DNA from: Mobula birostris
Lineage: Eukaryota
DNA length: 64,000 nucleotides
Assembly (NCBI RefSeq): GCF_030028105.1
Contig: NC_092384.1
Span: 42,911,553 to 42,975,552 of the forward strand
Reading direction: 5' to 3'
Positions 2,425 through 53,340 of this stretch are shown here, piece after piece. The translations under genes were made by a program, and so were the position numbers. Position 1 is the first letter of the stretch; every line of letters starts with the position of its first letter. A model generated the notes under the pieces. The model saw only the letters and a list, made by a program, of their open reading frames with translations, searched no databases and was not told the origin of the DNA.

Positions 2425-2488
2425 ATGGCACCTGATGTTTCCCAGCTCTTCGTGACAATTCATGTTTTACACCTTCCTGACATAAAGT
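2425..2488 (+). CDS. Putative leader exon [21 protein letters not shown](S)
   Basis: ATG in strong Kozak context (aaaATGG). Phase-1 donor T|GTAAGG at 2489 matches the phase-1 acceptor of the V exon 320 nt downstream. The hydrophobic core [10 protein letters not shown] is modest, so signal-peptide function is uncertain. There is an in-frame upstream ATG at 2416. Confidence 0.6.
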
Positions 2489-5400
2489 GTAAGGTTTATG
2501 TAGCATAAGGTTCCCCTGGAGACTTGTGGCCCCAATCCAATACAAACATTTTGTATTTCTTAGCCATGAAGCTGATAGGAATTACATTTTTTTCTGTAGA
2601 ATTTTACAAACCAACTATTCTTTTTTAACCAATTAATGATTTGTTGTCAATCAAAAAACTATAGATGCTGGTAATCTGAAAAAAGACACAAAATGATGGA
2701 AACTCAGGTAGCATCTGTGAGGAGAAAAAGAATAGACATTTGTCAAGGCTGATAAACTGACATGTTTTAAAACTTATTTCATTTTGCACTTTCATCTTTT
2801 TAATATAGCTACATTGGATTTGGAAGTCAGCCCAACAGTGTTGGATGCCACAATTGGTGAAGGAGTCCTATTAAGTTGCTTATTTTCTCACACCAGTAAA
2901 CTTGACTTGAGCTACATTGTGATCGAGTGGAATCAGAGAACAGGAGATAATGAGAAGGCTATTTGCCTGTTTGAGTTTGGAGAATATGAAATCTATAGAC
3001 CTGGATCAAGTCTCTCTTTAAGCGAAATAAGCAAAGGAAATGCATCATTACTCCTAAAAAATGTTACTATTAATGACATTGGATCATACTCCTGTACAGT
3101 TACAATATTTTCTCATAAAAAAGTGGGGAGAGTTACTTTGTCGATTTCAGGTGAGTACAGAGATAATACCTGAAATCTGTCAAAACTGTGTTAGCTGAAA
3201 ACTGGAAATGTTAATGATGATAAAAATTACCACACGTGTTTGGTGACTAACATTAGAAAATACACCCACATGCCAAAGAAATTCAGTGTTCATCTGCATA
3301 ATGGTGATGATTTGAAATCCATTGTTAGTTTTAAACATGAGACTGATTATTAAGAGTAGAAAAAGTGTTAAGAATAATTGAAGCAAAACCCAAAGAAGGT
3401 CAATATCCAAAATATAAACAAGTGTCATAAAGTCATAGAAAAGTACATCTAGTCTGTGCCAAACCATTTAAGCTGCCCACTTTCATCAACCTGCGCCGGG
3501 ACCATAACCCTCCATGCCACTACTATCCATGTACCTATGCAAACTTCTCTTAAATGTTGAAATCAAACTTACATGCACCACCTGTGCTGTCCACTCATTC
3601 CACACACTCACAACCCTCTGAGTAAAGAAGTTTCCCCTCATGTTCCTGTTAAACTTTTCACCTTTTACACTTAACTCATGACATCTGGTTATAGTCCCAC
3701 CCAATCTCAGTGGAAAAAGCCTGCTTGCATTTACACTATCTATACCCCTCATAATTTTGTGTACCTCTATCAAATCTCCTCTCAATCTTCTGCATTGCAA
3801 GGCAGAAAGTCCAGACCGATTCAATCATTCCTTGCTGGAGGCATTGAGTAGGTCAGATAATAACAGTGGTAAGAGAAAAAAGAGTGAGCATTTCAGGGCA
3901 ATGTCTCTTCATTAGAAAAATTCTAAGAAGGGTGAGCTGGGCAAAGCTGGACAGATGGCCATTGAACAAACAAGATTTCATTGAACAGCACACATAATCT
4001 GGAAAATGGGAGGAGTGGGGAGGGCATGCAACTTGCTCCATTGCAAAGCACCATGAACATGTTATATTCGAAGTGATACCAAATGAGAAAGCTTATGAAG
4101 GTACTACTAGTACTATTACGTCGACTCAGGCCTAGGGGGCCAGCGTCGGGCACGATGATGGACTCTCCACTTCTCCCTCCCCCACATCAGTGTGTTCAGT
4201 TCATCTACATTAGCCGCGCCGCTGCCTTCTAGGATCGTGTTGACCATATTCTTGGGAGGGCACCCAGGGTTCATCCTACCGTGCTTGGGCTCCCATATGA
4301 TGACTAGCCTGGCAGGTAGCTCGGGGTGGCGTAGACAGTGTCCCCTAGTTGCAGTCTTCTCACCTCGATTTTAGTGGAGAGCACCAGTGGGTTGTTATAG
4401 AGCTCAAAGTTTGTTATGTGCTGTTGCCAATTCACATCAAGAGACATCCGGATCATTCGTGTATAGCAACCATCCAGAGACTTGTGCATCGTCTTGGTGA
4501 GTGTCCACATCTCGTATCCGTACGTGAGAATGGACTCTATGACTGCTATGAAAATCTATGAAAATGCTATGAAGCTAATGCAATATATATCCTGCTTCTT
4601 TTATTATTGTAGCACCTCCTGCAGTCTGGGTAAACACTGTAAGTATTACAATTGAACCTGGTGAAGATAAAGCAATTATTTGTGAGATGCAGAACTTTTA
4701 CCCAAAGAACCACTCTGTCACTTGGTTAAAAAGTGGCTCGAAAGGCAATGGAAACCAGGTCGATATCACATCCCAAGCAGTTTCTGGAACACCTCAGCAA
4801 AATCAAGATGGGACATTTAATCTGATTTCATTCCTAATCATCAAAGGAAACCAGTCAGATGATGGATCTTTTTATATCTGCCAAGTGGATCATGAAGCTT
4901 TAAAATCACCAGTGCAAAAAGCCATTAGTTTGACCATAAAGGGTGAGTTATAATAAATGAGGTTGGTATCATTTCTCTTACGCCCTGTTTATTCTTATTT
5001 AGGGAACCTTGGTTAGAATTTTGTGTAACTGAGCCACAAGAGAAAGGCATCACTGTAAGAAGCAATCATCATCCAGTCTCTTGCCTAATGGTACATCAGT
5101 TCCTTAAAATTAGTCTGACTTGTTAACACTGTTACATTGTTTGCTGTGTTTCATTTAAAATAAGTTTTTTGTCATTTATTTGCAATATGTACACAAAATA
5201 TTTCAATAGAAAAACTGCCAACCTTTGAACTCACCTTATCAGAAATATATACAGCAATAAAATAGTTTTATAGCTGCATTTCACTGACTATTTATACAAT
5301 ATCTGAATCATGCGGTTTCTAAATTATTTTTTGCAGTTTCATTGTCAAATTATGCAAGAAGAGAGTCATTTGACATGAACATCCGACAGTTTTCAAAATT

Positions 5401-8400: not shown

Positions 8401-11400
8401 GCTTTATTGTACTGTAATAATTTTTTCAGTTGCACAATATTTAACTAAGCATAGCTGTCTGACCAGATTTGCATACTCAATGTGTTTTAGTGTTCAGTCC
8501 ATCTATGACCTTGACTGCTTTTGAAAAAAAAGTAACTTCACTGCGATTGTTAAAAGCAGCAAATGCTGGAACTATCCAGCAGGTCAGTCCACATCGGTGG
8601 GAGGAGAAACAGAGCGAACGTTTCACATCCAAGGGTTTTTGACATGAAGCATTGATTCTGTTTCTCTCCCCACGTATGCAGCCTGGCCTCCTGAGTATTC
8701 CCTGCATTTTCTGCTTTCAGTTAAGCTCGCCAGTATCTGCATCTTTTATATATATATATATATATATCTATTTGAACTGAAATTGATCATTGTCCGTCAA
8801 TCAGATTAGTAAAGGAGCATTCCTTAAAAAAATAAAGCAAGAGGATCAGCAAAGTAAATGAGTGAGAAACGGTCTGGAAGGTTAGATCACATGAGATCCA
8901 AGGTGAGATAGCCAATTGGATGAGAATATTGGCAGCATGGTTAATAAGTTAGCATATCTAAGATTGCAGTGAATTCTAGATTAACTGAGCCGGTGTGCGG
9001 ACAAATGACAGATGGGTAAATGTGAAGTCTTCCATTTGGGAAAGACAAGCAAGCGCAGCAAAGTAAATGGTAGGGTCCTAGTGATTGCTGTAGACTGGAG
9101 ACCCGGGGTGCAGGTGCATGGTTCCGTGGAACGGGCAACACACACAGACATATACTTAGGAAGGCATCAGGATATTGAATACAACAATTGAGAACATCAT
9201 GTTACAGTTGTACAAAATGTTAGTTAGGCCACATTTAGAGTACTTCATGCAGACCTGGTTGTCCAACTGTAGGAAGAACATCATTCAGTTGAAAAGGATA
9301 CAAAAAAGATTCAAGAGGATGTTAATAGAACTGGAGGGTTTGAGTTATAATGAGGGGCTGGATAGGCTAGCCTATTGTCCCATGGAGCATTAGAGGCTGA
9401 ATGGTGGCCTGACGGAGAACAATAAAATCAAGAGGTGAAAAGCCACCATCTTTTTTCCAGAATAGGGCAGTTCAAAATGAGAGGACCTAGGCTTAAAGTG
9501 AATGGAAAAAAAAAATAAAAGGGGCCTAAGGGACAATGATTTCCCGCAGAAGATGGTCCTGTATGGATCCTGCTGCCAGAGGTATGTAGAGTGGTGTACA
9601 GCCACAATGGTTAAAAGGCATTTCAGCAGGTACATGGAAAGGAAAGAGTTAGAGGGCTATGAACCTAAGGGACACCTCAGTCTGACATGATCCAGTTGGG
9701 CTGAAGGGCCTGTATTCCATGCTGTATAGTTATATGACTCTGACTCTACAAGTAGCAGAGCCTTTTTTTTAGTAAAGAACAACAAATCGATTATGTTTCT
9801 CTTTGATTTTCAGTTACTCCCAGGGTGACAAATATTGTTAAATCAAACCACTGGAACACCAACGCTCCACTTTCTCTTGCCTGTGCAGTTTACTGGTTCG
9901 GACCAAAACCAATCGTTGTGTCTTGGTACAGGGAGGAGGTGGGTAAATTCCAAAGAGTCCTCATTGGTAAATGGGACAACACTTCACACTGTGCAAAAAG
10001 GAAGTCAAAAGGGTATTTTCAGAATGAACAAGAAGATAAAGCAATGTTGTTCCACAAAGGAGAATGTGATATTGCTGTGACTTGGAAAAGCCACGAAAGT
10101 AGTGGAATGTACAGTTTAATATCTCAACTCACCTTCAGATGTGCAAGAGCTGCGGAAGGAAAGCAGGCGTACAATTTTTCTGTCCAGCATGGCTCACTGA
10201 AGCAAAACATTTTAAGATCCGTTATCGTAGAAATGGAAGGTGAGTTGCTGTTATTTTATTGCAGAATAGGCCAAAATAAAATTTGAAATATTTTAAACTA
10301 AACTAAAATAGACATTGATAAGAAATAGAAACCCTTTGGAACTCTTTGTTCTGTACAATCTATAGCCGCCAGCAGTCTATTCCACACACTCACCATTCTC
10401 TACGTAAAAAAATCTTATCCCTGACATCTCCTCTGTACCTATTCCCCAGCACCTTAATACTATGCCCTCTCATGCTAGCCATTTAAGTCCTGGGAAAAAG
10501 CCTCTGACTATCCACACAATCAATGCCTCTCATCATCTTATACACCCCTATCAGGTCATCTCTCATCCTCCATCACTCCAAGGAGAAAAGGCCGAGTTCA
10601 CTCAACCTATTCTTATAAGGCATGCTCCCCAATCCAGGCAACGTCCTTGTAAATCTCCTCTGTACCCTTTCTATGATTTCCACATCCTTCCTGTAGTGAG
10701 GCGACCAGAATTGAGCAGAGTACTCCAAGTGGGATCTGACCAGGTCCTACATAGCTGCAACATTACCTCCCAGCTCTTAAACTCAATCCCATGATTGATA
10801 AAGGCTAATGCACCGTATGCTGCCTTAACCACAGAGTCAACCTGCGTAGCAGCTTTGAGTGTCCTATGGACTCGGACCCGAAGATCCCTCTGATACTCCA
10901 CACTGCCAAGAGTCTTACCATTAATGCTATATTCTGCCATCATATTTGACCTACCGAAATGAACCACCTCACACTTATCTGGGTTGAACTCCATCTGCCA
11001 CTCCTCAGCCCAGTTTTGCATCCTATCAACGTCCCGCTATAACCTCTGACAGCCCTCCACACTATCCACAACACCCCCAACCTTTGTGTCATCAGCAAAC
11101 TTACTAACCATCCTTCCACTTCCTCATCCAGGTCATTTATAAAAATCACGAAGAGTAAGGGTCCCAGAACAGATCCCTGAGGCACAGCACTGGTCACCGA
11201 CCTCCATGCAGAATATGACCCGTCTACAAACGCTCTTTGCCTTTTGTGGGCAATCCAGTTCTGGATCCACAAAGCAATGTCCCCTTGGATCCCATGTCTC
11301 CTTACTTTCTCAATAACCCTTGAATGGCATATATGTTAAGATTTCATTTTGTAATATTTTCTGGTATATCACATAGTATATGCCACTAGTGGAAAGAGTG

Positions 11401-17400: not shown

Positions 17401-20400
17401 TGAATATACTCAAGGTCAAACTACAAATTCTCATGTTTGTTATATGCAATATTTCTGAGGTTTACTAAATTCCCCTGAGAGAATCACACAGAGATTTTGG
17501 ATTTATTTATCTAACCCTGTGAGGCAGTTGATCAAAGAGCGGCCCTTTTGCTTCAGGGTCAGGTCGTCTTGGAATCAAGTCTTGTTCCAGAGCTGAGCAC
17601 CAAAATCGACCAATACGTTTGAGAGCAGTGCTGAAAGGGTGCTGCTGTGTGAGGAAAAACTGCCATCCGTTCTTTCAGGTGGACCTGATAGGGCGGCACG
17701 GTAGCATAGTGTTTAGCACAACGCTTTACAGTAGCAGCGACTCACATCCAATTCCTGTCGCTGCACGATCTCCCCATGACTACGTGGGTTTCCACAGGGT
17801 GCTCTGGTTTCCTCCCACGGTCCAAAGATGTACTGGTTAGTAGGTTAATTGGTCATTGTAAATTGTCTTGTGATTAGGCTAAGGTTATATTGGGGGTTGC
17901 TGGGCAGTGTGGCTCGGAAGACCCCATTCCGCACTGTGACTCCAAATAAATAAATAAATTATATATTTCATATTATTAAATCAAAGAGAAGTGGGGGAAT
18001 TTCCTTGGATGTACTGGCTAATATTTGGTATGTCCTAATCAGCATAAATAATGCCAGATAATTTGCTTTTAATTATGGGGATTTATTGTGTGCAAATTGG
18101 CTGTGATGTTTCTTCCAGTAATGACATCCATTTTAAGTACTGGCTATTTGCACTATTTGTAACGTGCACCTCAAATCATCAAAACATACTGTGAAATGTG
18201 TCATTTTCATCAGTGCCAACTCAGCCCATGGATTGTGCTGGGGTGATCCCACTAATGTCACCACACTTCTGGTGCCACGATAACATGCCCACAACTCACC
18301 AGCCCTAACCATATATCTTCGCAATGAGGGAGGAGATCGGAGCGCCCAGGTAAGCCCAGACCATCACAGAGCGAACATACAATCTCCTTACAGACAGTGG
18401 CAGGAATCAAACTCTAATCGGTGATCACTGGCGCTGTACAATGATTGTTCTAACCCCTATGCTACCGTGCACCAAGGTTTAAAGTTCAAAGTACACTTAA
18501 TATCAAAGTATGTATACATTATACAACCTTGAGATTTGTCTCCTTTCAGGCTGCCACAAAACAACCCATAAAAAAAGACCATCAAACAGCCGGTGTGCAG
18601 AGAAAAATCGAATCACGCAAACTAATAAGAGTAAACAGAAAGTATTCACAGCGCAAGTGAGTCCACAGACACAGACCCAGAGCATCCGTAGCAGGCGCAG
18701 TTCATCGCAGAGCTGTGTAACCATCGCGGAACAGCCAGCAGAATCGGCCTTACCATCTCCTCTGGTCCCGACACCCTGCCTTTTCAATCTGGCCTGGCGT
18801 TTAACTCATCCAAACATTGCTGCAGCACCCAGACCCTGTCACTTCGATACACTCCAGGCCTGGACCCCGCCACCACATTTTGGCCTGTACCTGACCTTTC
18901 CAAACTGGCCTGGCGCTTAGATCAATTAAACCACAGGTCTTCCCTGGCTCTCGGTTTAGGTGGACAGGCCTTGATTTTTCCTCATTTCCGCTCGCCCTGA
19001 CTTTGCCTCACCTCCGCTTGCTTCGAATCTGCCTCAACCTCACTTCTACTTGCTTCGACACTCGACTCTTCCTCACCTCCACCCACCTCTCTGTTGTTTG
19101 TACTGATCGTTTACCATAAATGTTATGAGAAGGAGTGTTGTCAATAAAGCATTTGGTTGTATTTCCTGATGAAGGGTCTCAGCCCGGAATGCCGACTGTA
19201 CTCTTTTCCATAGGTGCTGCCTGACCTGTTGGGTTCCTCCAGCATTTTGTAGGTGTTGTTTGGATTTCCAGCATCTGCACGCTTTCTCTTGTCTGTAGTT
19301 GTGTTTTTTGTTTTGTTTGCCACCAACAAGTAGTCGCTGGGCCTCACCAGCGACTTCTTAAACTGGAAATTATAGAGTGCTGTATAAGTTACATTTCTTC
19401 AATACTTTTATGTTCTTAAATAACATTCCTCATAGGTGTTGATGACGATATTGAATATTTTCCAACACAAATGAAGCGCAAAGACTGGGCACTGCAGGCT
19501 ATTGAAGAAGGGCGCCGCACTATAGTTAATTACATCAGTCCAAACATCCATCCACTCCTAGATATTTTAAAAGAGAAGAAAATAATCTCTGAGAATGATC
19601 AGAGTGATATAAAAGCTAAGCTAGACATCGATAAAGGCCGGACTCTCCTGGACATAATGAGCCACAGAGGGCAGTGGGCTTGTGTTCAATTTTTCAATGT
19701 CGTACAGAATACTGATGATCTTTATCCTGGCATCAGAAAGTACCTAACATCACTTTTGGAATCCTACACTGAGAAAGATGACAGACCTGCTTTTGATCTC
19801 CTCTGTGAAGGCAGACCAACGAGTTTATTTCAGATCAACAACGAAAAATCCGAAATAATCAATATTCCTGAAGGTAAGTGTGCTTACATATTTAGAATTA
19901 ATGGACATTTCTGTATTTAACAATAATGAATCATGAAAAGCTTGAACCCATCTCTTTGCAAATTCCATAATAATATATCAAAGTACTGTGACACAGATAT
20001 GCTCTGTCACAGTACTTTGATATATAGCTGGTTGAGGTGAGTACTTGAAGGCTTGAAGCCCTCACACATTAAAAAAAGATGAAAATTATTCCTCCATGGG
20101 ACTATTCAGTTAAAAGGCCTCCAAACATAGCCCTCAACCTAAGGACATAATTTCTCTTGAAGTATTCTGTTCTCCATTTTGAATTTAGTTCATCATGTAG
20201 GCAAAGTCATCTAGTCACCATCTACAATCTTCCAGCCACCTCCACGGTCAATGGTACATGTACATTAGGTAGTTTTGTCAAATCCCCGGCTCCAAGCAAA
20301 GCACTTTTACAGTTTTATTCAGTTTAAATAACATTCCTCAGGAATTTCTGGATTGGATTAGCTGGAAGTTGTGTAGTTGTTCAATATAATTTGATAAGAA

Positions 20401-23400
20401 ATGTGTATTTGTGCAAAGTGCTTCTGAATGAATAGGCTCATTGAGTAAAGGACCTCTCTCACATTCCCTTACAATGTCCCAGGTTTATCTGCACATACTT
20501 CACACAGTGAATAATTCATGTGCCATTGTTGCCTCACTTTTATTGAATATAAAGGTGTTTTGTAGAACAATTTTACACCAGATTTTTGCAGAATTTATAC
20601 CTAAAATGTACCCAAGATTGTATTCTAGCAACAATTAGATTTTTATTTTTTCCTTAGTATTCCTGTGAATTTAGGAGAAGTTAATTGTTTTTCAAATAGA
20701 GCTACACCTTAACAATATGTGATACCAAGAATCCAATTTGTGAATTGAGTTTACTGATAGGCTCTGCCTACCATATTTGTGGAAAGGAGTATATTACTGT
20801 TTGAACAATATTGTTGTCTACCTTCACATCATTCTAGAAGTAGTATTTAAACTCTATTGAACATGTTTTGTATTGTCTTACTTATGTGTAATAGAGCTTC
20901 TAGTACTTATATTCCAATGATCTACCTTCTGTATAAGACTTCATTCTTGCAAGGCATCACCTCACAGCAAATGTTATCCCATCATTACAGTTACAATGTT
21001 CATTGTAAATCAACCTCACAGATATGAAAGGTTTGATTTAATTTCAAACATAAGAGATCCTGCAAATACTAAAAATCCAGAGTAACGCACAAAATGCTAG
21101 AGGAACTCAGCAGGTCAGGCATCATCTATGAACAAAAATGAAGAGTCAACATTCAGCCAAAGACCCTTGAAAGGTCCTGGTGCCCTGTTGAAAGGTTTTG
21201 GCCCGAAACATCATCTCTTTATTCCATTGCATAGATGCTGCCTGACTTGCTGAATTCCTCCAGCATTTTTCATGTGTTACTTTAGTTTAATTTTTATGAT
21301 TTGTGTTCTAGTATGTGCCCATTTTATTACTGTATCTTATACATTATGTTTTATTACTCACTTTGGATGTCGCATTCATTCTAATGTTCTGTCTTTTGTA
21401 ATTATAGAAATCCTTAAAGCAACTGATAATCACAAGAGCATATTGAGAGCTCAGATGGAGAGAATAAAACCATACTTTGGATTTGATAACTCTAGTCCAT
21501 TACTGCAGGAGCATTTTACCAGCCTGGTCATTCTCAATGTCCAAGAAAGGAACAAAACTGAACATGAGCTGCTCCAGCACAGAGACTATACAGCCTGCGA
21601 GTATACAGATTTGCAGCAGCTTCTTTCCCCATCTGCACCAGGGAAGCCATCACCACGAATCACACTCGTGCAGGGAGTGGCAGGTATAGGAAAAAGCATT
21701 ATGATGCAGAAGCTTGCCTACAGTTGGGCATGTGGAACAGGTTACACTGGATTTTATATGTTGCTGTATTTCAGTTTCCGGGAGTTAAACACAATCACTG
21801 AGAAAATCAGTCTGACCGAGCTTATTATACGTAGTTATCCTCATTTGACTATATTATGCAAAAAACTCCTGCAATTTCCAGCTGGAATTCTATTTTTGTT
21901 TGATGGATTGGATGAATTCAAATGGCCTCTTGATTTTAGTGTTCATTCACTTGATAACCCATCCGTTTCTGAACGCATTAACCACTTGATTGTAAGCATC
22001 ATCAAGGGAGATCTCCTGCGTGACTCAACTGTTCTTATCACATCCCGCCCAACCTCAATTGATTTAGACCACAAAACCTATTTTAATCGGTGTGCTGAAA
22101 TTTTAGGGTTTTCCAGGAATGAAATTGCAAAATACTTTGAGAAGTGCCTCAAGAATAAAACATTTGCTGATCATGTCTTCCAGACTGTGAAGAACATTGA
22201 CTCCTTGTATGGGCTCTGTTACGTCCCTGCGTTTTGTGACATTTTGTGCTTCTATCTCCGTAAATCATTTCACTCTAAAGGCAAATGGTCCAATCTGTCT
22301 TCATTTCCCAAAACGATCACAGATTTATTCCTTCGTTTCACCAAGTGTTTACTTGTCTGTACCAGTGGTGAGGAAGAAGACCCTGAGTCCTTCTGCATAG
22401 AAGCTGATGAAGACAAGAATGAAATTATTAACTTGGCACAACTTGCATGGGATGGAGTCATCAATAAAACAATAATATTTTCATCTAAAGACGTTGAAAA
22501 AAACATCTCTCAAAAGGCCAGAGTAATAAAATCCTTCTGGAAAAAAATCCTCACTAAAGAGAGCCTACAAATGATGCATTCTCATATTTGGCAATTTTTC
22601 CATCTGACTCATCAAGAGTTTTTTGCAGCACTCTATTGTATTTCTGGTGTGGATCATGTGCACAAGGCCTTCAGCTCAAAGGGCAGCACTTTTGAGATTG
22701 TGCTGAGGTTCACTGCTGGCTTGGTCTCTCGCAGCAACAGAAAACTTGTCCAACAGTTGGTGCCTGAACACCAGGTCAAAGAAAGGGAAGTCTTTGCAGC
22801 TATTGAAAATGCTGCTGCTGTTGACATTCCAAAAGAAGACAAGCTAACTCCTGAAAATATCAAAAAATATACAGCACACAAAAGACAAAAACTAACAGCC
22901 TCTCATTGTCTGTATGAAGCAGCAAATGAAGATCTAACAAAATCAGTTGCTTCCCAAACAAGTGACTGTGTGAATTTTTCTTACATCACTTTGAATGTGA
23001 CTGACTGCACTGTGATTGCAAACCTCCTTTCCCATCACACAACTATTGAAACACTCGAACTGGATGGGTGCAAAGCTGGAGCTGCTGGTTTCCAAAGACT
23101 GAAGTCTATTTTTTCCAGAATCAAAACACTGAGGTAGTGAAATAGAACATAGAAATCTACAGCACATTGCAGGCCCTTCGGCCCACAATGATGTGCCGAC
23201 CACGTAACCAACTCTAGAAACTGCCTAGAATTTCCCTAGCGCATAGCCCTCTATTTTTCTAAGCTCCATGTACCTATCTAAGAAACTATTAAAAGATCCT
23301 ATTGTATCCGCTTCTATCGCCACCGCCGGCAGTGCATTCCACACACCCACAAGTCTCTGTGTGAAAAACTTACCTCTGACATTCCCTTGGTACCTATTTC

Positions 23401-26400
23401 CAAGCACCTTAAAACTATGCCCTCTCATGTTAGCCATTTAAGCCCTGGGAAAAAGCCTCTTGCTATCCACACGATCAATGCCCCTCATCATCTTATACAC
23501 ATCTATCAGGTCACCTCTCATCCTTCGTGGCTCAAAGGAGAAAAGGCCAAGTTCACTCAACCTATTCTCATAAGGTACGCCCTCCAATCCAGGAAGCATC
23601 CTTGTAAATCTCCTCTGCACTCTCCCTATGTTATCTACATCCTTCTCGTAGTGAGGTGACCAGAACTGAACACAGTACTCCAAGTGGGATCTGACTAAGG
23701 TCTTGTATAGCTATAATGTTACTTCTCGGCTCTTGAACTCAATCACACGGTTGATGAATGCCAACACACCATAAGCCTTCTTAACAACAATGTCAGCCTG
23801 CACAGCAGCTTTGAGTGTCCTTTCAACACAGACCCCAAGATCTCTCAGATCCTCCGCACTGCCAAGAGTCTTACCATTAATACTATATTCTGTCTTCAAA
23901 TTTGACCTACCAAAATGAACCACCTCACACTTATCTAGGTTGAAGTCCATTTGTCACTTCTTTGCCCAGTTCTGCATCCTATCGATATTTCATTGTAACC
24001 TCTGACAACCCTCCAGACTATCCACAACACCCCAACCTTTGTGTCATCAACACACTATCTAACCCACCCCTCCACTGCTTCATCCAGGTCATTTATAAAA
24101 ATCACAAAGAAGAGGGATCCCAGAACAGATCCCTGCAGAACACCAACCTCCATGCAGAATACGAACCATCTACAACCACCCTTTGCCTTCTGTGGGCAAG
24201 CCAATTCTGGATCCCAAAAAAAGGTCTCCTTGGATGCCATGCCTCCTTACATTCTGAAGGAGCCTTGCATGGGGAACCTTTATCAAATGCCTTACTGAAA
24301 TCCATATACACTACATCCACTGCTCTACCTTCATCAATGTGCTTTGTTACATCCTTAAAGAATTAAATCAGGCTCGCAAGGCACAACCTGCCCTTGACAA
24401 AGCCATGATGACTATCCCTAATCAGATTATGTCTCTCCAAATGCTCATAAATCCTGCCTCTCAGGATCTTCTTTAACAACTTGCCCACCACTGAAATCAG
24501 ACTGACTGGTCTATAATTTCCTGGATTATCTCTACTCCCTTTCTTGAACAAGGGAAAAACATTTGCTATCCTCCAATCCTTCAGTACTTCTCCCATCCCT
24601 ATTGACGACGCAAAGATCACCTCCAGAGGCTCAGCAATCTCCTCCCTTGCTTCCCACAGTAGCCTGGAGTATACTTCATCCGGTCCCGGTGACTTATCTA
24701 ACTTAATGTTTTTCAAAAGCTCCAGCACATCCTCTTTCTTAATATCTGTATGCTCAAGCGTTTCAGTCATCCCCACAATTGCCAAGGTCTTTTTCCCTGG
24801 TGAATACTGAAGCAAAGTATTCAATAGGTACCTCTGCTACCTCCTTCGACTCCGTGCACATGTTTCCACTATCACTCCTGATTGGTCCTATTCCCACATG
24901 GCTCATCCTCCTGCTCTTCACATACTTGCAGAATGCCTTGGGGTTTTCCTTAATCCTGTTCACCAAGGTCTTTTCATGTACCCTTCTAGCTCTCCTAATT
25001 TCATTCTTAAGCTCCTTCCTAGCAACCTTGGAATTTTCTGGAGCTGTAACAGTACCTAGTTTCTTGAACATTTTGTAAGCTTTTATTTTCTTAACTGGAT
25101 TTTCTACATACATTGTATACCATGGTTCTTTAACTCTACCATCCTTTCCCTGCCTCAATGGAACATACCTATGCAGAACTCCATGCAAATGTTCCCTGAA
25201 CATTTGCCACATTTCTGCCATGCATTTCCCTGAGAACATCTGCTCCCAAGTTCCTGCCTAATAGCATCATATTTCCCCCAACCCAATTAAATATTTCCCC
25301 AAATTGTCTGTTCCTATCCATCTCTAGCGCTATGATGAAGGAGATAAGTTGTGGTCACTACCTCCAAACTGCTCTCCCACTGAGAGATCTGACACCTGAC
25401 CAGGTTCATTTCCCAATGCCAGATCAATTACAGCCTCTCCTCTAGGTGGTTTATCTAGATATTGCATCAGGAAATCTTCCTGAACACACCTTACAAACCA
25501 CCCCATCCAAATCCCTTGCGCCAAGGAGATGCCAATCAATATTAGGAAAGTTAAAATCACCCAGTGAGGTTGGTTGCTCATCCTGATATGCCTAGATGAT
25601 TCCATTTCTCCTATAGACAATTCTTAAATAATGTCAGTGACCCAGCTTCAACCACTCTCTCAGGCTCTGCTTTCCAGGTACTTACCAGTCCTTGGGTGAA
25701 GGCAGTCCCTTCATATCCCCTCCAAAACCTTTCTCCCATACCCTAAATCTTCTATGTCCTAAAAACCCTCATATACCTTATGCCCCTAGTTATAAAAATT
25801 ACCCTATCTACACTCTTCAGAATTTAAATAAAAACTCAACCAAATCTCCTTTTATCCTCTTCTGCTCCAGGAAGATGAATAGTGAGCAAGAAGAAATAAT
25901 TTATGATCTTTAGTTTATGGGAAAATACTAGCAAACATCAATAGCATGATTATAACTCAGTAAATGAATAATTCATTGCTTGAAAAATGCAGATACAAAG
26001 AGAGCAAAAGATTATTATTGCAGCACACACCAAATGCTGGAGGAACTCAGCAGGCCAGGAAGCATTGTGGAAAAGAGTCAATAGTCGACATTTCAGGCCG
26101 AGACCCTTCATCAGGGCAAAAGATAATTATTGCTTTGTTTTTACAGTTTAGAGGGAAACATGCTAGAAGATGAAGGAGCAGAGATTATTGCTGATGCTCT
26201 CAGAAAAGAAACATGTAGAATAGAAACCTTAAGGTAAAACTTCCAATTCTTTACACATTTATGCACAATATTGAGAAGTATTGTTTTATTTGAAGTTGTA
26301 CACTAGTAACATTAAGGTTAAGCAAGAAGTTTCAGAAGTATAAATTCAATTAATGTAGAATGAAAACCAATAGGGTTAAAGTTTCTCAGCTTCATTCTAA

Positions 26401-29400
26401 CAAGGTCACTCGTGCATTGTCTCAAGGCTGTGGCCTCGTAAACATGGATTTAAAATCCTTTACTTTATATATCTTAGAAACCTGAAAAGGCACAATTTAT
26501 TCACTCTGACCAGTTGGCATCCTTTTGTGTTAACCCCATCACCCAGCTCTTGGTTCAGAGCTCCTCTGTGCCTAGGTGATGCAAGACATCCAGACGTTCA
26601 TTGGGACATTTCTTAGATGCTCTCAGCAAACCAGCTTTAACCACTTCCGGTGCATTTCAGGCACTTTACCATCTCTTCCCTTTACCCTCAACCTGCATTA
26701 TCTAGTTTATCTTCTCTGATATGGAGAGAAGTTTTCTGCAGTCTACCTTACCCGTTTCTCATTTAATTATATGCATTTTAGTCACGTCTCCTCTTAACCT
26801 TCTCTGCTCCATGACAGGGATCATCCTGGTGAATCTCCTTTACAATTAATTCTCTAAATCTATCTGGTAATTAATTCTGAGCTATATAACGTATAAATTG
26901 TGTACACATATTGTATGTTACTGTCATGAACTCTTAGGACCAGCGCATGGCATCGGAGGACATCAAGCCTCAGTGCTCCAATGCGCCCAAGCATCAGTGA
27001 TTTGTTTTAACTAAAACTTGTTGAGTAATTGGTTTAATCATTAAGTTTTCCTTGTGCTTTCATGCCACTTATTTTTTTGAATGTGGGTTCCTCGTACATC
27101 CTGTTTTTAGTTTGTTGTGTTTTAATTTTGATATGCACGGGATTTCCGTGCTATATGCATTATTTAGGTTAGTCATGAATAGCGTTCATCACTGAGTCCT
27201 GAAGTTGGAGTAGGAATGAACTAACATTCTGAGTCATTTATTATTCCTCTGTTACATTCTTCAAATAAATCCTCATCATTACTTTCTACCTCTGAGTCTT
27301 GAGTTTACTCTGCGCCTGGCTCGTTTGCCTGAAGAAATCATTACAGCAGGTCTCGGGCATCATGGATCCAGCAGGGTTTGATCAATTGGTAACTCGGTTA
27401 TTGGAATTTTTGCAGGTTGAAGCACAACTCCATAGGGGAGAAAGGAGCAGCACAAATTGCAGAGGCTTTGAAAACAAACAGCAGCCTGAAGGTATTGGGG
27501 TATGTATTGAACCTACTGGATTCAACACTTGACAACCTCTGGATCGTTTGTAAGGAACAACGTTCTATTCAATGTATCAGAACACTTCAAAGCACTTAAC
27601 TTCACTAATGAGCAAAAACCTTAAACTGAAACACAAAGGGAGAGATTATGTAGAATCTTAATCAGAAAGGTGAATTTTACAGTGCAATTTTTAAAGTGGG
27701 AAAGGGTAAGAGAAGTGGAGAAGAAGGAATTCCTGGAGAGGAATTTAAGTACAACACCATAGAAGAATTGAGAGAGCTTTACAAGTAACTTCACTGAGAG
27801 AGCCACTGTACAGAGGCAGAAGTAAGCATTTTGAACAATAGACCGTACATTGGTATAGTATATATTTTGTCATCTAATACGTCAAGTCTGATTTAACTTC
27901 ATATGTTTGCAAGGGAGGGACATGGGGATGATGATAAAAGAAGAGAATTTGTAGTAGGACCAGAAACAAATGCTTCTCAATATTAAATTACAGAAAGTGT
28001 GTTTCTTTCAATACTGATATCAAACAAGCAGTATGACTTAGAAACCAGGAAGGTATATGCTGTCATTATGGATATGGAATAAGTTACTGGGTTTCAAATA
28101 CTGTTGGTTAGGAGCAGTTGTAGATGGGGAATAGAAGGGACCAGTACAGGTTGTTGGAGAGCATCATAATAACAGCGAAAGCCCAAAAGAGAAGCTATTG
28201 CTGCTGATGTTGTGACCATGACTGGTAGAGTGATATCTGAAACCAATAATCTAAGTCCCACCCATCAGAACAATGAAAAGATACTGGACAATGATGTAAC
28301 TAACTGTACTAAAGGCTGTAATTTGGTAGAATAAGATGAAGACAAAATTACCTTTGTTATCAAGCAACACACATAAAAATTGCTGGTGAACGCAGCAGGC
28401 CAGGCAGCATCTATAGGAAGAGGTACATTTGACGTTTTGGGCCAAGACCCTTCGTCAGGACTAACTGAAAGAAGAGATAGTAAGAGATTTGAAAGTGGGA
28501 GGGGGAGGTGGAGATCCGAAATGATAGGAGAAGACAGGAGGGGGAGGGATGGAGCCAAGAGCTGGAAAGTTGATTGGCAAAAGGGATATGAGAGGATCAT
28601 GGGACAGGAGGCCAAGGAGAAAGAAAGGAGGAGGGGGGGAACCCAAAGGATGGGCAAGGAGTATAGTGAGAGGGACAGAGGGAGAAAAAGGAGAGAGAAA
28701 AAGAAATATATATATAATAATAATAAATAAATAACGGATGGGGTACGAAGGGGAGGTGGGGCATTAATGGAAGTCAGAGAAGTCAATGTTCATGCCATCA
28801 GGTTGGAGGCTACCCAGACGGAATATAAGGTGTTGTTCCTCCAACCTGAGTGTGGCTTCATCTTTACAGTAGAGGAGGCCGTGGATAGACATATCAGAAT
28901 GGGAATGGGACGTGGAATTAAAATGTGTGGCCACTGGGAGATCCTGTTTTCTTTGGCGGACAGAGCGTAGGTGTTCCATCTGGGTAGCCTCCAACCTGAT
29001 GGCATGAACATTGACTTCTCTAACTTCCGTTAATGCCCCACTTCCCCTTCGTACCCATCCATCCATTATTTATTTATTTATTGATTTATTCATTCATTCA
29101 TTCATTCATTCATTCACTCTCCTTTTTCTCCCTCTGTCCCTCTCACTATACCCCTTGCCCATCCTCTGGGCTTCTCCCCTCCCCCTTGTCTTTCTCCATA
29201 GGCCTCCTGTCCCATGATCCTCTCATATCCCTTTTGCCTATCACCTGTCCAGCTCTTGGCTCCATCCCTCCCCCTCCTGTCTTCTCCTATCATTTTGGAT
29301 CCCCCCCTCCCCCTCCCACTTTCAAATCTCTTCCTAGCTCTTCCTTCAGTTAGTCCTGACGAAGGGTCTCGGCCCGAAACGTCCACTGTACCTCTTCCTA

Positions 29401-32400
29401 GAGATGCTGCCTGGCCTGCTGTGTTCACCAGCAACTTTTATGTGCGTGTTGCTTGAAATTGATTTCCTCGTGATTACCTTTGTTATGTTCATTTGGGTAC
29501 GATTACTGATTAGAAGCTTTCGAAGGCTCAAACAAATGATTTAACTGCATTGTTGTTTTAGTCGCTGTATTGCTGATAGATCTCTGATGCTTAACTAAAT
29601 CACTTTGCCTTCATTAGGTTGAGAGCAAATGTTGTCAAAGCCAAAGGTGCTCAGTTCATAGCCGAGGCCCTGGAAGTCAACACCACACTGAGAGTTTTGG
29701 GGTATGTTGTCGTTCTCTTCTACTTGTGCTTGTGTGATTTCAGAGCAGCACCGTTTACTGCTTATTTTGAAAACTCGATTGACATTGTCTCATTGCGGCT
29801 CGTGTTCTTCATGTTAAAAATATTTTCAGTTTATCTTGTATAATTTATGATATATGACCTTTAAAAACCAGAGGTCAAAAAGTAAGTGTCTGTACTCACA
29901 GCTTTATCATCATTCAATCAATGCTAGAACAAAGCATTAGAATTGCTTATCTGTGTGATCTAAAGAGCACGGACATTATGCTAGATCTTCACCATTTGCT
30001 CATATCTTCATATGGGACAGTACTCCTGATTGAGCAAACTGCATTACTGGGTGCTCATTGTTAGGAATTCAAGCAAGGCTGAAGCCAATGAGGACGAGAG
30101 CGGAGGGCGGGCGGGCATTCAATGCTGTCTGCCTGCGTTTGACCAGCCTTCCTCTTCCTCTCGCTGGCTGCTTTCTCTCGGAGGAAGGCGCAGGAGCCAT
30201 TTGCAAGGATTGATCGGCGTGGCTTGTGGTTAAGGATCCTTTTCCAGAAATTTTGAGTGTGATGTTGCATGTATTTCTGGATTCTGGTTACTCTTTCCTT
30301 TTTGCTGTTTTTGAGCAGTTTGATCAGGGTGCTTCAGTGTGGACTGGGGTGCTTCGGTGAAGTCTGACTCTGCAGAATGCAGTCGGCTAGTGGTGTGGAA
30401 CTGAACTGAACTAAACGGAATACTGCTAGACTCGTAGTTTGATGTTGCCAAAAAACTCCATGTTCATTAAGCTGTTGTGTGCCTTTTTAATACTTATAAA
30501 GCTCCACTGAAAGCTGACTCAGTGGATTCTGATTAGAACATGGAACAAGAAGAGCAAATTGTCTCATCGCTTTGATTCCTCTCTATCAATACCTATGTCT
30601 GTTTCTATAGAGTTTAAAATTTTTTAAACTTTAATTTAAATATGAACATTAATATATTTGTATCTTTGTCTTAACTCAGCTTGCAGTGTAACAAGATTGG
30701 AGATGAAGGTGCAAAGTACATGGCCCAAGCAGTTGAAAGAAATCGCAGCTTGGTTGAATTACGGTATAGATTAAATCTAAGCTCACATATTAAAACCTAT
30801 CCCACTTCAACTGCTCAGGCACACGCAACTTTGTAACAATTTTAGCTTATTAACTTTTAGTTGCCATATTTTTCTTCTCAAGGCTTAGACCTATCAAGTA
30901 CTGAGTTTCTTTGAAATATTTTACAGACTTCACCTATCATATCTACTCTTCAGCTGACAGCTCCCTTGTAATTCAAAATAATTGCAATATATTACATGTC
31001 CTCAGTTATAAGAATTCAAAGCTATGATACTCCTCTAACAGCAAATGACCTTATCCTGCTGGTCCAATCCTAGATACCTCCCGACAATTTGCTCTCCACT
31101 TTCATGATAAGTACTCTGTTTTATTCACAAAAAATAAGATCTGTCCTTGGGAATTCCAGGTGTCCGGCCAGAAGAGCTTAAAGGCTAGCTGATCAGGTCT
31201 ACAATCATTGAAGTGTTTTAATTCATTTATTCTTTTCAACTTGGAAATGTCCTACACTGTGACTCATTTCATAATTCATTTGTAGCTTAATATACCGTTA
31301 ATGAGTCAAATATAGTCTTGAACATTACTTATACCCACTCAATTCCACAGGAGATATGATTGAGAAATCATTGCTTTTATTGTCAAATTATATATCTATA
31401 ATTATTGTGTAAATAATTGCTTTTGACTGTAATGGAAACAGGAAATGCTGGATATAATCAGCAGGTCAAGCCTTGGGAAAAGAAACATGAAAATCTTTCA
31501 GGTTGAGGGCCATTCATCAAAACTTCAGAACTCTGTTCTGACAGAAGGTTTTGACCTAAAGCATGAAATCCATTTTTCTATGCAGTGTGACTTGCTGAGT
31601 ATTTCCTGCATTTTATGTTCTATTTTAGATTTCCAGCATGAGCAGTTTTTGTTTTAAGTTCAATTGAATACTGTATGACTACTTTGGTTAGCAGGTTTAA
31701 CATAGTTTATTTTGTGTAAAATCCTTTCTGAAAAAAGTTCAAGACAGAAAATTCAGTACTGTCTTTCAATCTCATTTTTTTAAATCTTAATCAAACCTTT
31801 AAGACTTATTTTCACTTTTGTAATATTTTCACTGAATCATTGTTTATTGCTCATTAAATGCTGGTTTTGCCAGTACCATGCATATTCCAAAATATGAATA
31901 AGTTAAGAAAACACAGTAACAAATTCATTAACCAGTAGTTTCTATAATGCACATTTTTGACCTTTATTTTCATATATATTGTCAGTATAATTGTAAGACA
32001 AGATCTGATGAATAAAATAGATATATCTTGTTTGCAGACTTGGAGATAATGAAGTCACTGACAAGGGGAGTGGTTACTTTAGAAGCACTTTAGAAGTAAA
32101 TGATACACTTGAAGAACTGTGGTAAGAATTTTGTTTTGATTTCCATGTTTTTGAAAGTTTATTTATTATAATGTAATTGCACTTTGGGATCTCATGTGCA
32201 GGGCTTTTATTTTCTTGGAACAAAACAATCCAACAGATAGGCAGATTTCAGTATTATGATGTTTGCTATTTATGATGGAAATCATATCTTTAAATAAAAA
32301 TAAATTGAATTTGTCCCTATTGTTCATTACTAAGAAAGAAATACTATGCAATGTGAAGAGTACGAAAAGCTCTTTATAAAAAATATTGTGGAATTAAATA

Positions 32401-35400
32401 CAAAAATAATGTTAAACTATTGTATAACCAAATATCTTGTTTAACACTGCAAATTTAAACTTTTCTGTTGGGGTATTTGAAGATAAATTATTATAAACCT
32501 GAAGATAAAACCAACAAAAAACTGTAATAACCCAAACTGCATTGAAAACTTGTAAAGTTACCAAATAAAATGCATTTCGGTTATGCATTTATTTTTTAAA
32601 AAACATCTTAAATACCTATAAAATAGATCAATATGTTTTTTAAAAATATTAGTTTTAGTGCCTCCCATGGTCTTGCACACGGTGCCCAAGGAACATAGAA
32701 AGCCTACAGCACAATATAGGCCCTTCGACATGTCCTTACTATAGAAATTACCTCCGGTTACCCATAGCCCTCTATTTTTCTAAGCTCCATGTACCTATCC
32801 AGGAGTCTCTTAAAAGACCCTATCATATCTGCCTACACCACTGTTGCCAGCAGCCCATTCCACGCACTCACCTCTCTCTGCATGAAAAACTTACCCCTGA
32901 CATCTCCCCTGTAACTTCTTCCAAGCACCTTAAAACTGTGCCCTCTCATATTAGCCATTATATTGTTTATTTGTGGTCAATGTGACATAGATACATAGAA
33001 AACCTACAGCACAATACAGGCCCTTCGGCCCACAAAGTTGTGCCGAAAATATCCCTATCTTGGAAATTACTAGGCTTACCTATAGCCCTCTATTTTTCTA
33101 AACTCCATGTACCTATCCAAAAGTCTCTTAAAAGACCCTAACATATCCGCCTCCACCACAGTTGCCGGCAGCCCATTCCACGCAGTCATCATTCTCTGAG
33201 TAAAAAACTTACCCCTGACATCTCCTCTGTACCTACCCCTCAGCACCTTAAATCTGTGTCCTTTTGTGGCAACCATTTCAGCCCTGGGGAAAAAGCTTCT
33301 GATTATCCACACGATCAATGCCTCTCATCATCTTATACACCTCTATCAGGTCACCTCTCATCCTCCGCCGCTCCAAGGAGAAAAGGCCGAGTTCACTCAA
33401 ACTATTCTCATAAGGCATGCTCCCCAATCCAGGCAACATCCTTGTAAATCTCCTCTGCACCCTTTCTATGGTTTCCACATCCTTCCTGTAGTGAGATGAC
33501 CAGAACTGAGCACAGTACTCCAAGTGGGTCTGACCAGGGTCCTATATAGCTGCAACATTACCTCTCGGCTCCTAAATTCAATTCCACGATTGATGAAGGC
33601 CAATACACCGTATGCCTTCTTAACCACAGAGTCAACCCGCGCAGCTGCTTTGAGCGTCCTATGGACTCGGACCCCAAGATCCCTCTGACCCTCCACACTG
33701 CCAAGAGTCTTACCATTAATGCTATATTCTGCCATCATATTTGACATACCAAAATGAACCACTTCACAATTATCTGGGTTGAACTCCATCTGCCACTTCT
33801 CAGCCCACTTTTGCATCGTATCAATGTCCTACTGTAACCCCTGACAGCCCTCCACACTATCCACAACACCTCCAACCTTTGTGTCATCAGCAAACTACTA
33901 ACCCATCCCTCCACTTCCTCATCCAGGTCATTTATAAAAATCATGAAGAGTAAGGGTCCCAGAACAGATCCCTGAGGCACACCACTGGTCACCGACCTCC
34001 ATGCAGAATATGGTCCGTTTACAACCACTCTTTGCCTTCTGTGGGCAAGCCAGTTCTGGATCCACAAAGCAATGTTCCCTTGGATCCCATGCCTCCTTAC
34101 TTTCTCAATAAGCCTTGCATGGCCTACCTTATCAAATGCCTTGCTGAAATCCATATACACTACATCTACTGCTCTTCCTTCATCATTGTATTTAGTTACA
34201 TCCTCAAAAAATTCAATTAGGCTCATAAGGCACGACCTGCCCTTGACAAAGTCATGCTGACTATTCCTAATTATATTATACCTCTCCAAATGTTCATAAA
34301 TCCTGCCTCTCAGGATCTTCTCCATCAACTTACCAACCACTGATGCAAGAGTCACTGGTCTATAATTTCCTGGGCTATCACTACTCCCTTTCTTGAATAA
34401 AGGAACAACATCTGCAACCCTCCAATCCTCTGGAACCTGTCCCATCCCCATTTGTGATGCAAAGATCATCGCCAGAGGCTCAGCAATCTCCTCCCTCACC
34501 TCCCACAGTAGCCTGGGGTACATCTCATCCGGTCCTGGCGACTTATCCAACTTGATGCTTTCCAAAAGCTCCAGAACATCCTCTTTCTTAATATCTACAT
34601 GCTCAAGCTTTTCAGTCTGCTGCAAGTCAGTACTACAATCACCAAGATCCTTTTCTGTACTGAATACTGAGGTAAAGTATTCATTAAGTACCACTGCTAT
34701 TTGCTCCGGTTCCACACATACTTTCCTACTGTCACACTTGATAGATCCTATTCTTTCACGTCTTATCCTCTTACTCTTCACATACTTGTTGAATGCCTTG
34801 GGGTTTCCTTAATCCTGCCCACCCTAATTTCCTTCTTAAACTCCTTTCTATTAGCCTTATAATCTTCTAAATCTCTAACATTACCTAGCTCTCTGAACCT
34901 TTTGTAAGCTTTTCTTTTCTTCTTGACTAGATTTATTACAGCCTTTGTACACCACAGTTCCATAACTGCCCTGTCTCATTGGAACGTACCTATGCAGAAC
35001 TCCACACAAATATTTCCTGAACACTTGCCACATTTTTTCCGTACTTTTCCCTGAGAACATCTGTTTCCAATTTAAGCTTACAATTTCCTGCCTGATAGCC
35101 TCATAATTCCCCTTACTCCAATTAAACGCTTTTCTAACTTGTCTGTTCCTATCTCTCTCCAATGCTATCGTAAAGGAGATAGAATTATGATCACTATCTC
35201 CAAAATGCTCTCCCACTGAGAGATCTGACACATGATGAGGTTCATTTCCCAGTACCAGATCAAATACAGCCTTTCCTCTTGTAGGCTTATCTACATATTG
35301 TGTCAAGAACCCTTCCTGAACACACCTAACAAACTCCACCCCATCTAAACCCCTTGCTTTAGGAAGATGCCAATCGATACTTGGGAAATTAAAATCTCCC

Positions 35401-52026: not shown

Positions 52027-53340
52027 AGATTCACTACTCTCAGCCTACCGGCCAACCTCAACGCTTTGCAATTCGCCTACCGGAGCAACAGGTCAATGGC
52101 AGATGCCATCTCTCTGGCCCTACATTTCTCCTTAGAACACCTGGAGAATAAAGATGCATGCGTAAGGCTCCTTTTCATTGACTAGAGCTCTGCTTTTAAT
52201 GCCATCATTCCAAATAAACTGATTCCTAAGCTCTGGAACCTGGGCCTTAGCACTCAGATCTGCAGTTGAATCTTCAACTTCTTCACAGACAGGACCCAGG
52301 CTGTAAAAATAAGGGACAAGCTCTCCTCTACAATCACTCTGAGCACCGGTGCCCACAAGGCTGTGTACTCAGCCCCCTGCTGTACTCACTGTACACCCAT
52401 GATTGTGTAGCCAAGTTTCCATCGAACTCAACATATAAGTTTGCTGATGACACAACAATTGTAGGCCATATCTCAGGTAATGATGAGTTTGAGTACAGAG
52501 AGGAAATTAAGAACCTGGTGGCATGGTGCGAAGACAATAACCTATCCCTCAACGTCAGCAAGATGAAGGAATTGGTTTTTGACTTCAGAAGGAGTAGCGG
52601 ACCGCACGACCCCATTTACATTGGTGGTGTGCAAGTGGAACAAGTCAAAAGCTTTAAGTTCCTCGGGGTCAATATCACAAATGACCTGACTTGGTCCAAC
52701 CAAGCAGAATCCACTGCCAAGAAGGCCCACCAGCGCCTTTACTTCCTGAGAAAACTAAAGAAATTTGGCCTGTCCCCTAAAACCTTCACTAATTTTTATA
52801 GATGCACCGTAGAAAGCATTCTTCTTGGGTGCACCTCAACCTGGTATGGAAGTTGTCCTGTCCAAATCTGGAAGAAGCTGCAGAAGATTGTGAACATAGC
52901 CCAGCAGATCACACAAACCAATCTTTCCTCCTTGGACTCACTTTACACCACACACTGTCTGAGCAGTGCTGCCAGGATAATCAAGGACACGACCCACCCA
53001 GCCAACACACCTTTTGTCCCTCTTCCCTCCGGGAGAAGGCTCAGGAACTTGAAGACTTGTACGGCCAGATTTGGGAACAGCTTCTTTCCAACCGTGATAA
53101 GACTACTGAACGGATCCTGACCCAGATCTGGGCCGTACCCTCCAAATATCCGGACCTGCCTCTCAGTTTTTTTTCACTACCTTACCTTCCCTTTTCTATT
53201 TTCTATTTATGATTTATAATTTAAATTTTTAATATTTACTATCGATCTGTACTCCAGGGAGCACAAAGCGCAGAATCAAATATTGCTGTGATGATTGTAC
53301 GTTCTAGTATCAATTGTTTGGTGACAATAAAGTAAAGTAA
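52027..53340 (+). mobile_element. Rex1/L2-like LINE RT fragment nested in CR1
   Basis: PQGCVLSPLLYSLYTHDC, KFADDT, FLGVNIT in ORF 52266-53120. (TAAAG)n tail. CR1 sequence lies on both sides. Confidence 0.88.

Follow-up and report, generated by a model that had tools for sequence, protein, structure and literature searches.

In reviews, vertebrate NLRs are sensors of the cytosol and B7-H6 is a stress ligand; how the latter is induced is poorly understood. A stretch of the Mobula birostris genome (64,000 nucleotides of contig NC_092384.1, CpG-depleted and without gaps, here called the window) raises the question of whether both can be parts of a single molecule, because exons for a B7-like immunoglobulin (Ig) ectodomain and a transmembrane (TM) helix are followed on the same strand by exons for a CARD, a NACHT domain and leucine-rich repeats (LRRs). 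A first-pass annotation of the window had proposed one fused protein. Our analysis indicates that the locus very probably contains a conserved single-copy elasmobranch gene, the orthologue of a nurse-shark GenBank entry named 'B7H6', which joins B7-H6-like V and C1 domains and a TM segment to a third, divergent Ig-like domain (C1*) and a CARD-NACHT-LRR module. From the order of the predicted segments we strongly infer a type I membrane protein with a signal peptide, in which the V and C1 domains would be exposed outside and C1*, CARD, NACHT and LRRs would be cytosolic.

The exon structure was compared with existing gene models. Twelve exons of the window, when spliced, give residues 26-1319 of the RefSeq protein XP_072135758.1 (Mobula birostris, 'NOD1-like') with zero mismatches, and the window thus carries 12 of the 13 coding exons of this gene. 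All Ig exons and the CARD exon are phase 1-1, and the LRR exons, six of which were mapped, are phase 2-2. The landmarks of the first-pass annotation are in place, namely the ATG at 2425, the GT donor at 10240, the AG acceptor at 19434-19435, the 35 open nucleotides before the ATG at 19471 and the stop codon at 37963-37965. Recomputing its 13-exon model also returned 3948 nucleotides and 1315 amino acids with a terminal stop only. Twelve of these exons agree with RefSeq letter for letter, but the proposed leader exon (2425-2488) proved spurious. It is missing from XP_072135758.1 and from every orthologous model; the 2.8 kb before the V exon contain 14 such ATG...GT phase-1 mini-exons by chance, of which it is one.

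The true leader lies upstream of the window. In Mobula hypostoma, whose locus (L001) is 97% identical to the window across the window length, the conserved leader MAFKLRGKMNCLLIDLMIFYILSLV (Mobula) is encoded at L001:10001-10075. This exon precedes the V exon by 6.3 kb and window position 1 by about 3.5 kb. A signal peptide of the M-N-C-F-L... type is found in all species aligned. Since the real leader exon is this distant, the tblastn hits that extended orthologue leaders into the intron upstream of 2809 are a false alignment of hydrophobic residues and were discarded. The domain order proposed for the downstream exons was borne out by Pfam, which places a V-set, a C1-set, a weak second C1-set, a CARD and a NACHT domain in the expected exons (Table 1).

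Table 1. Exons and other gene features of the Mobula birostris window
Feature	Position	Strand	Supporting observations
Leader exon of the first-pass annotation, rejected	2425..2488	+	Chance ATG...GT mini-exon inside the leader-V intron
IgV exon, B7 family	2809..3150	+	Phase 1-1; Pfam V-set 6.5e-12; exact RefSeq match
IgC1 exon	4613..4942	+	Phase 1-1; Pfam C1-set 1.4e-13; exact RefSeq match
TM exon, 38 codons	8064..8177	+	Phase 1-1; consensus splice sites; hydrophobic stretch of about 22 residues
C1* exon, divergent Ig-like domain after the TM	9814..10239	+	Pfam C1-set 6.4e-05, confined to the first third
Start of the C1*-CARD intron, candidate alternative 3' end	10240..10360	+	Donor GTGAGT; AATAAA at +36; ray/shark alignment
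CARD exon, 146 codons, internal coding	19436..19873	+	Phase 1-1; Pfam CARD 9.7e-11
Large NACHT exon (FISNA-like lead-in, NACHT, winged helix, HD2, LRR start)	21408..23133	+	Phase 1 to 2; Pfam NACHT 3.6e-32, NLRC4_HD2 5e-09
LRR exon 1, 87 nt	26147..26233	+	Phase 2-2; tblastn with orthologues; exact RefSeq match
LRR exon 2, 84 nt	27416..27499	+	tblastn with orthologues; exact RefSeq match
LRR exon 3, 84 nt	29618..29701	+	tblastn with orthologues; exact RefSeq match
LRR exon 4, 84 nt	30680..30763	+	tblastn with orthologues; exact RefSeq match
LRR exon 5, 84 nt	32038..32121	+	tblastn with orthologues; exact RefSeq match
Last coding exon, ending ...NPNLRLN and stop TAA	37881..37965	+	tblastn; exact RefSeq match; stop at 37963-37965

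The same architecture is present throughout the elasmobranch annotations. Searching with the NACHT exon retrieved one close relative, a 1168 amino acid protein of Narcine with the order leader-V-C1-TM-C1*-NACHT-LRR and a NACHT domain that starts at residue 425. With the Ig half of this protein as the query, complete V-C1-TM-C1*-CARD-NACHT-LRR proteins of 1289-1346 amino acids were found in 12 sharks and rays, and members of the same sequence cluster add Mobula birostris, Hypanus, Cetorhinus, Chiloscyllium punctatum, Scyliorhinus torazame and Ginglymostoma. At least 15 elasmobranch species have models of the fused protein (1289-1352 amino acids), made by NCBI and by independent annotation (GCC25762.1 and GCB79211.1). 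The architecture is found in Narcine, Pristis, two Mobula species, Hemitrygon, Hypanus, Pristiophorus, Heptranchias, Heterodontus, Carcharodon, Cetorhinus, two Chiloscyllium and two Scyliorhinus species, Mustelus, Rhincodon and Ginglymostoma. A laboratory deposit from the nurse shark (QTT61908.1, 1318 amino acids) contains all domains and is named 'natural killer cell cytotoxicity receptor 3 ligand (B7H6)'. In each of the five loci compared, POP4 is the upstream neighbour on the same strand, and the interval contains no called gene. Conservation and independent annotations in sharks and rays strongly support the fused Ig-TM-CARD-NACHT-LRR architecture. The gene is conserved in all sharks and rays examined, and if a single molecule is indeed encoded, the fusion would predate the shark-ray split.

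The names of these proteins give little indication of their composition. The basking-shark orthologue is called 'pleckstrin homology domain-containing family F member 1 isoform X1', and others are listed as 'NOD1-like', 'NLRC3-like' or 'uncharacterized'. The adjacency of POP4 and PLEKHF1 recalls human 19q12. As a consequence of such automated names ('NOD1-like', 'NLRC3-like', 'PLEKHF1 isoform'), the architecture is hidden in at least 15 annotated genomes.

Whether the Ig and NLR halves belong to one gene had been argued from the phase-1 acceptor of the CARD exon and from the 35 open nucleotides that precede its first ATG. Both features are present as described, but as proof of a fusion they are weak, because all Ig and NLR exons concerned here are phase 1-1 and an open stretch of 35 nucleotides is close to chance. 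The case is carried instead by comparative data. The CARD acceptor is located at the same base in all six genomes compared, and the 35-nucleotide stretch contains no indels; 23 of its 35 positions are invariant, versus 12 of 35 in the intron just upstream. The YFP residues encoded upstream of the CARD ATG are invariant in the proteins of 12/12 species. In four of these species the Met of the CARD exon is replaced, by Val in Narcine and Heptranchias and by Leu in Chiloscyllium and Rhincodon, and the genomes of two sharks confirm a TTG codon in place of the ATG. The next in-frame Met in the four species would truncate the CARD. Its conserved acceptor and frame, the invariant YFP and the lost Met mark the CARD exon as internal and coding.

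The annotated isoforms point in the same direction. They skip the CARD (Narcine X4, Pristiophorus X2), C1 together with the TM exon (Mustelus X5) or single LRR exons, but Ig and NLR parts are always linked, and none of the annotated isoforms begins at the CARD. The NCBI pipeline generally reports alternative isoforms only when they have transcript support. Among proteins of 345-1097 amino acids, a search with this NACHT domain found nothing above 34% identity and no stand-alone protein of that length; therefore, no stand-alone CARD-NACHT-LRR version is annotated in any species.

These data also bear on the view that two adjacent genes have been wrongly merged, which we consider very improbable. 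A V-C1-TM-C1* gene would then end just after 10240, a CARD-NACHT-LRR gene would start at the ATG at 19471 under its own promoter, and the fused models would be read-through products or prediction artefacts that have spread between annotations. Such a boundary would agree with a conserved AATAAA block and a short read-through tail after the C1* donor, with the ATG at 19471 in 8/12 species, and with a weak CpG-rich patch at 18601-18900. It is difficult to reconcile with the Val and Leu substitutions at this Met, and with invariant residues and zero indels upstream of the ATG while the adjacent intron is unalignable between shark and ray. Moreover, the C1*-CARD intron, which is 9.2 kb long and repeat-swollen in Mobula, measures 909 nucleotides in the catshark Scyliorhinus; isoforms splice C1* directly to the NACHT exon; and in about 18 species and three annotation sources there are zero NLR-only models or isoforms. 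The CpG-rich patch (GC 0.52, observed/expected 0.67) is located 550-850 nucleotides upstream of the CARD exon and could be a repeat or an internal promoter.

The first-pass annotation had also stated that nothing ends the Ig part before the CARD exon. The consensus donor at 10240 is confirmed, but the statement needs a caveat, because a conserved block with AATAAA 36 nucleotides past the donor follows. About 110 nucleotides directly after the donor align between rays and sharks, while the remaining intron is unalignable, and a poly(A) signal hexamer occurs at +25 to +38 in five of the six genomes. Reading in frame past the donor gives a short, partly conserved tail, GEL(L/H/P)LFYC..., and then a stop. 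The block at 10240-10360, which has its equivalent at L001:23770-23890 in Mobula hypostoma, may be a candidate intronic poly(A) site that would yield a V-C1-TM-C1* protein without the NLR. Such an Ig-only isoform does not contradict the long form.

Selection on the individual domains was estimated from distant species pairs, since the pair of Mobula species had too few substitutions to be informative. The ratio of nonsynonymous to synonymous substitution rates (dN/dS) is below 1 in every domain exon, with values of 0.17-0.35 for V, 0.17-0.29 for C1, 0.37-0.69 for C1*, 0.28-0.46 for CARD and 0.13-0.19 for NACHT, and of 0.14 for the TM exon in comparison with Pristis.

The ectodomain is of the B7 type in its order, with V followed by C1 and the TM segment as judged by Pfam, PDB matches and hydropathy. 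In a search of PDB sequences, the IgV exon matched CD276, NCR3LG1/B7-H6 (4.5e-08), VTCN1, PD-L1 and TAPBPR; with the V exon alone, CD276 and CEACAM outscored B7-H6, which was among the best. For the C1 exon, human B7-H6 is the best non-antibody match in PDB (6e-14). When the Ig half was compared with proteins, the sole matches outside elasmobranchs were turtle NCR3LG1 sequences with 24-27% identity. Two N-glycosylation sequons in the V domain are invariant in the orthologue alignment. Vertebrate NLRs are usually soluble and lack both a signal peptide and a TM segment. The elasmobranch proteins depart from this trait: a TM segment of about 22 residues follows C1 in 14/14 orthologous proteins, with a Kyte-Doolittle 19-residue peak of 1.85-2.63 at the same place, and an N-terminal hydrophobic peak corresponding to the leader is present in 12 of the 14. 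The other two, both Narcine isoforms, fall below the threshold used and have the TM peak only.

The domain that follows the TM segment is a divergent Ig-like domain with a weak Pfam match, and it is predicted to be cytosolic from its position. Alignments show an invariant first Ig Cys, and the position of the second Cys is occupied by an invariant Phe (Y-x-F-x-V-x-H). This replacement is expected for, and fits, a reducing cytosolic compartment. An AlphaFold2 model of C1* is all-beta, and Foldseek matches it to Ig folds, the best geometry being that of the TAPBPR C-domain and the MHC class II beta2 domain. In two Mustelus asterias models (P0280 and P0302), a 34-residue copy of the C1* start lies between the TM segment and C1*; it may represent a second copy of an exon, or else an artefact of assembly or annotation.

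The cytoplasmic module has the composition of an NLR, with a NACHT domain, C-terminal LRRs (LRR_6 in the orthologues and in the window-identical protein) and a CARD directly before the NACHT domain. The NACHT motifs are intact, among them Walker A (GVAGIGKS), Walker B, sensor 1 and the winged-helix His, and the stretch FFHLTHQEF is present. Its closest solved structure is NLRP3 (3e-42, 148 bits), followed by NOD2 (106 bits), and the closest solved CARDs are ICEBERG, ASC and NOD1, all of them weak matches. The LRRs are of the ribonuclease-inhibitor type and belong to the most conserved protein parts in an alignment of 12 species. When protein representatives of all lengths were scanned with the NACHT domain, only the fused cluster exceeded 36% identity; the other NLR neighbours, named 'NLRP3-like', are 31-36% identical. 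Orthology to NOD1, as suggested by the CARD-NACHT-LRR order and the 84-nucleotide LRR exons, was therefore rejected, since the NACHT domain resembles that of NLRP3 and reaches only 31-36% identity with sequences beyond the fused cluster. For the same reason, the RefSeq names 'NOD1-like' and 'NLRC3-like' are automated labels and, by these comparisons, do not denote orthology.

Several points weigh against a fused protein with the predicted topology. A C1-type Ig domain would be an unusual feature of the cytosol, and 9 of the 14 orthologous proteins have a sequon near the same position of C1*, which is odd for a cytosolic location. The C1* model is of moderate confidence only (predicted local distance difference test score, pLDDT, 67.8), and a full-length AlphaFold model, made for the CARD-less Narcine isoform, is unusable with a mean pLDDT of 40.9, only the leader and TM helices being visible. 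On the transcript side, the ATG of the CARD exon is retained in the majority of species mentioned above, an NLR-only product could still be made from an internal promoter, and many transcripts might stop before the NLR part at the conserved poly(A)-signal block. In addition, no matches were obtained when short protein fragments derived from transcripts were searched with the CARD exon.

If the halves are joined as predicted, the gene would encode an NLR tethered to the membrane, with an ectodomain of the NKp30-ligand type permanently coupled to a death-fold module that oligomerises. The direction in which such a molecule might work is a matter of more tentative judgement. We lean towards inside-out signalling, to which we give somewhat less than an even chance. 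The NACHT-LRR part would sense a stimulus, or be released, in the cytosol and oligomerise under the membrane; the oligomer would recruit CARD partners and at the same time cluster the B7-H6-like ectodomain for the expanded NCR3/NKp30 receptors of sharks. Skipping of the CARD, C1+TM or LRR exons and the possible poly(A) site after C1* could tune the system by setting which parts are made. Butyrophilins, in which the intracellular B30.2 domain controls the ectodomain of the same protein, provide an analogy for inside-out signalling.

The opposite direction had been proposed by the first-pass annotation and is equally defensible, although we give it a lower chance, on the unlikely side. In this outside-in mechanism, a ligand would cluster V-C1, the NACHT domains would oligomerise and the CARD would signal to a caspase, ASC or RIPK2-type partner, in a manner likened to a death receptor or to AjNLRC4 of sea cucumbers; a microbe or, on a second cell, a receptor of the NKp30 family could be the ligand. 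The idea is compatible with the architecture, which does not differ from that for inside-out signalling, and with purifying selection on the CARD, and a membrane Ig-TM-NACHT receptor of the sea cucumber binds microbes via its Ig domains and oligomerises (PMC8699970). Against it, the LRRs have been kept among the most conserved parts, which suggests that cytosolic sensing or autoinhibition still matters, and the CARD is optional in some of the annotated isoforms.

Other roles, comprising regulation, a decoy function and a location at intracellular membranes, are taken together also on the unlikely side. One of them, which we regard as improbable when considered separately, would accept the fused transcript as real but deny a surface receptor: the NLR would be anchored at the endoplasmic reticulum, Golgi or endosome with luminal Ig domains, or the Ig part would serve only in regulation or targeting. 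Some mammalian NLRs, for example NLRP3 and NLRX1, act at the membranes of organelles, and one isoform (Mustelus X5) lacks C1 and the TM segment. The location of NLRX1 is also discussed in PMC8699970. On the other hand, a conserved V-C1 unit of the B7-H6 type with invariant sequons and a dN/dS of about 0.2 is what would be expected of a domain that meets an outside partner.

The elasmobranch protein can be compared with several known systems. In human B7-H6 the cytoplasmic tail is short, carries ITIM/SH2/SH3-type motifs (ITIM, immunoreceptor tyrosine-based inhibitory motif) and has no NLR. The ray protein resembles B7-H6/NCR3LG1 (PDB 3PV6, 4ZSO, 6YJP) in its V-C1 ectodomain and single TM segment, but its tail of about 1040 residues consists of an Ig-like domain and CARD-NACHT-LRR. 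With NLRP3, NOD1, NOD2 and NLRC3 it shares a NACHT domain in which Walker A and B, sensor 1 and the His of the winged helix are intact, an HD2 domain, ribonuclease-inhibitor-type LRRs in 84-nucleotide exons and an N-terminal death-fold domain. It differs from NLRP3 by a CARD in the place of the PYD, and from cytosolic NLRs in general in that a signal peptide, a pair of extracellular Ig domains, a TM segment and a third Ig-like domain come first. The butyrophilins BTN3A1 and BTN2A1 (IgV-IgC-TM-B30.2) are a model for inside-out signalling to lymphocyte receptors. They likewise combine a B7-family ectodomain and one TM segment with an intracellular sensor, which is a B30.2/SPRY domain instead of an NLR, so that the analogy is functional only.

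Another parallel is AjNLRC4 of the sea cucumber Apostichopus japonicus, which was experimentally shown to be a membrane pattern-recognition receptor that oligomerises (PMC8699970; also PMC13133943). Like the ray protein, whose topology is predicted only, it combines extracellular Ig domains, a membrane anchor and an intracellular NACHT domain in one polypeptide. In contrast, AjNLRC4, compared here by its description, comes from an invertebrate, has two predicted TM segments, lacks CARD and LRR, and signals to actin; there is no indication that the two share an ancestor. Within vertebrates, a Polypterus senegalus model (XP_039601942.1, P0195) contains a partial V-set, a butyrophilin-type Ig-C, a strong TM segment with a KWRKMRDK stop-transfer sequence, a death-fold-like stretch, NACHT and HD2. 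Its Ig subtype is different, its NACHT domain is about 32% identical, and it is a single RefSeq model from one species. This butyrophilin-like-TM-NACHT model of the bichir hints that such fusions arose more than once. In the same species, a further unusual NLR fusion turned up among the NACHT neighbours, a cluster of six annotated isoforms (P0265) with a TRIM (RING-B-box-coiled-coil) fused N-terminally to NACHT-LRR.

The claim that no vertebrate NLR of this architecture had been described was followed up in the open-access literature, where B7H6 and NACHT were never combined in one paper, no description of a vertebrate transmembrane or Ig-bearing NLR was found, and no functional study of this gene was found. 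A survey of whale-shark NLRs does not mention it. The claim must be weakened all the same, because the sequence is already in RefSeq/GenBank and an invertebrate Ig-TM-NACHT membrane receptor has been published (PMC8699970). The architecture may already be described in the literature on shark B7H6 (Kinlein et al. 2021, Immunogenetics 73:333), in which case it would be already known.

Beyond the coding exons, the window contains many interspersed repeats. They occupy 1-2300, 10366-13428, 16466-16796, 23145-25563, 32983-35904 and 38000-64000, and the long introns are a consequence of these repeats. Open reading frames (ORFs) for reverse transcriptase/endonuclease of long interspersed nuclear elements (LINEs) lie at 987-1991, 33735-34781 and 34881-35705 on the minus strand and at 42947-43904 and 52266-53120 on the plus strand, and pol-like ORFs of long terminal repeat (LTR) retroelements are located on the minus strand at 57-60 kb. 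The window ORFs outside the gene were rejected as genes, being fragments of LINE or LTR retroelements, and the 26 kb downstream of the NLR yielded no cellular gene.

In elasmobranchs, the NK-receptor ligand B7-H6 and an NLRP3-like sensor might be one molecule, in which danger sensing would be coupled to an 'induced-self' display to NKp30-family receptors or, in the reverse direction, engagement of the ligand would lead to killing. Possibly this reflects an ancestral logic of stress-ligand recognition whose components were later split into separate genes in bony vertebrates. We put this whole reading forward as speculative and hold it to be less probable than its negation. If the predicted architecture is true, the protein would be the first vertebrate transmembrane NLR, and it would provide a direct link between inflammasome-type sensing and recognition by natural killer and T cells.

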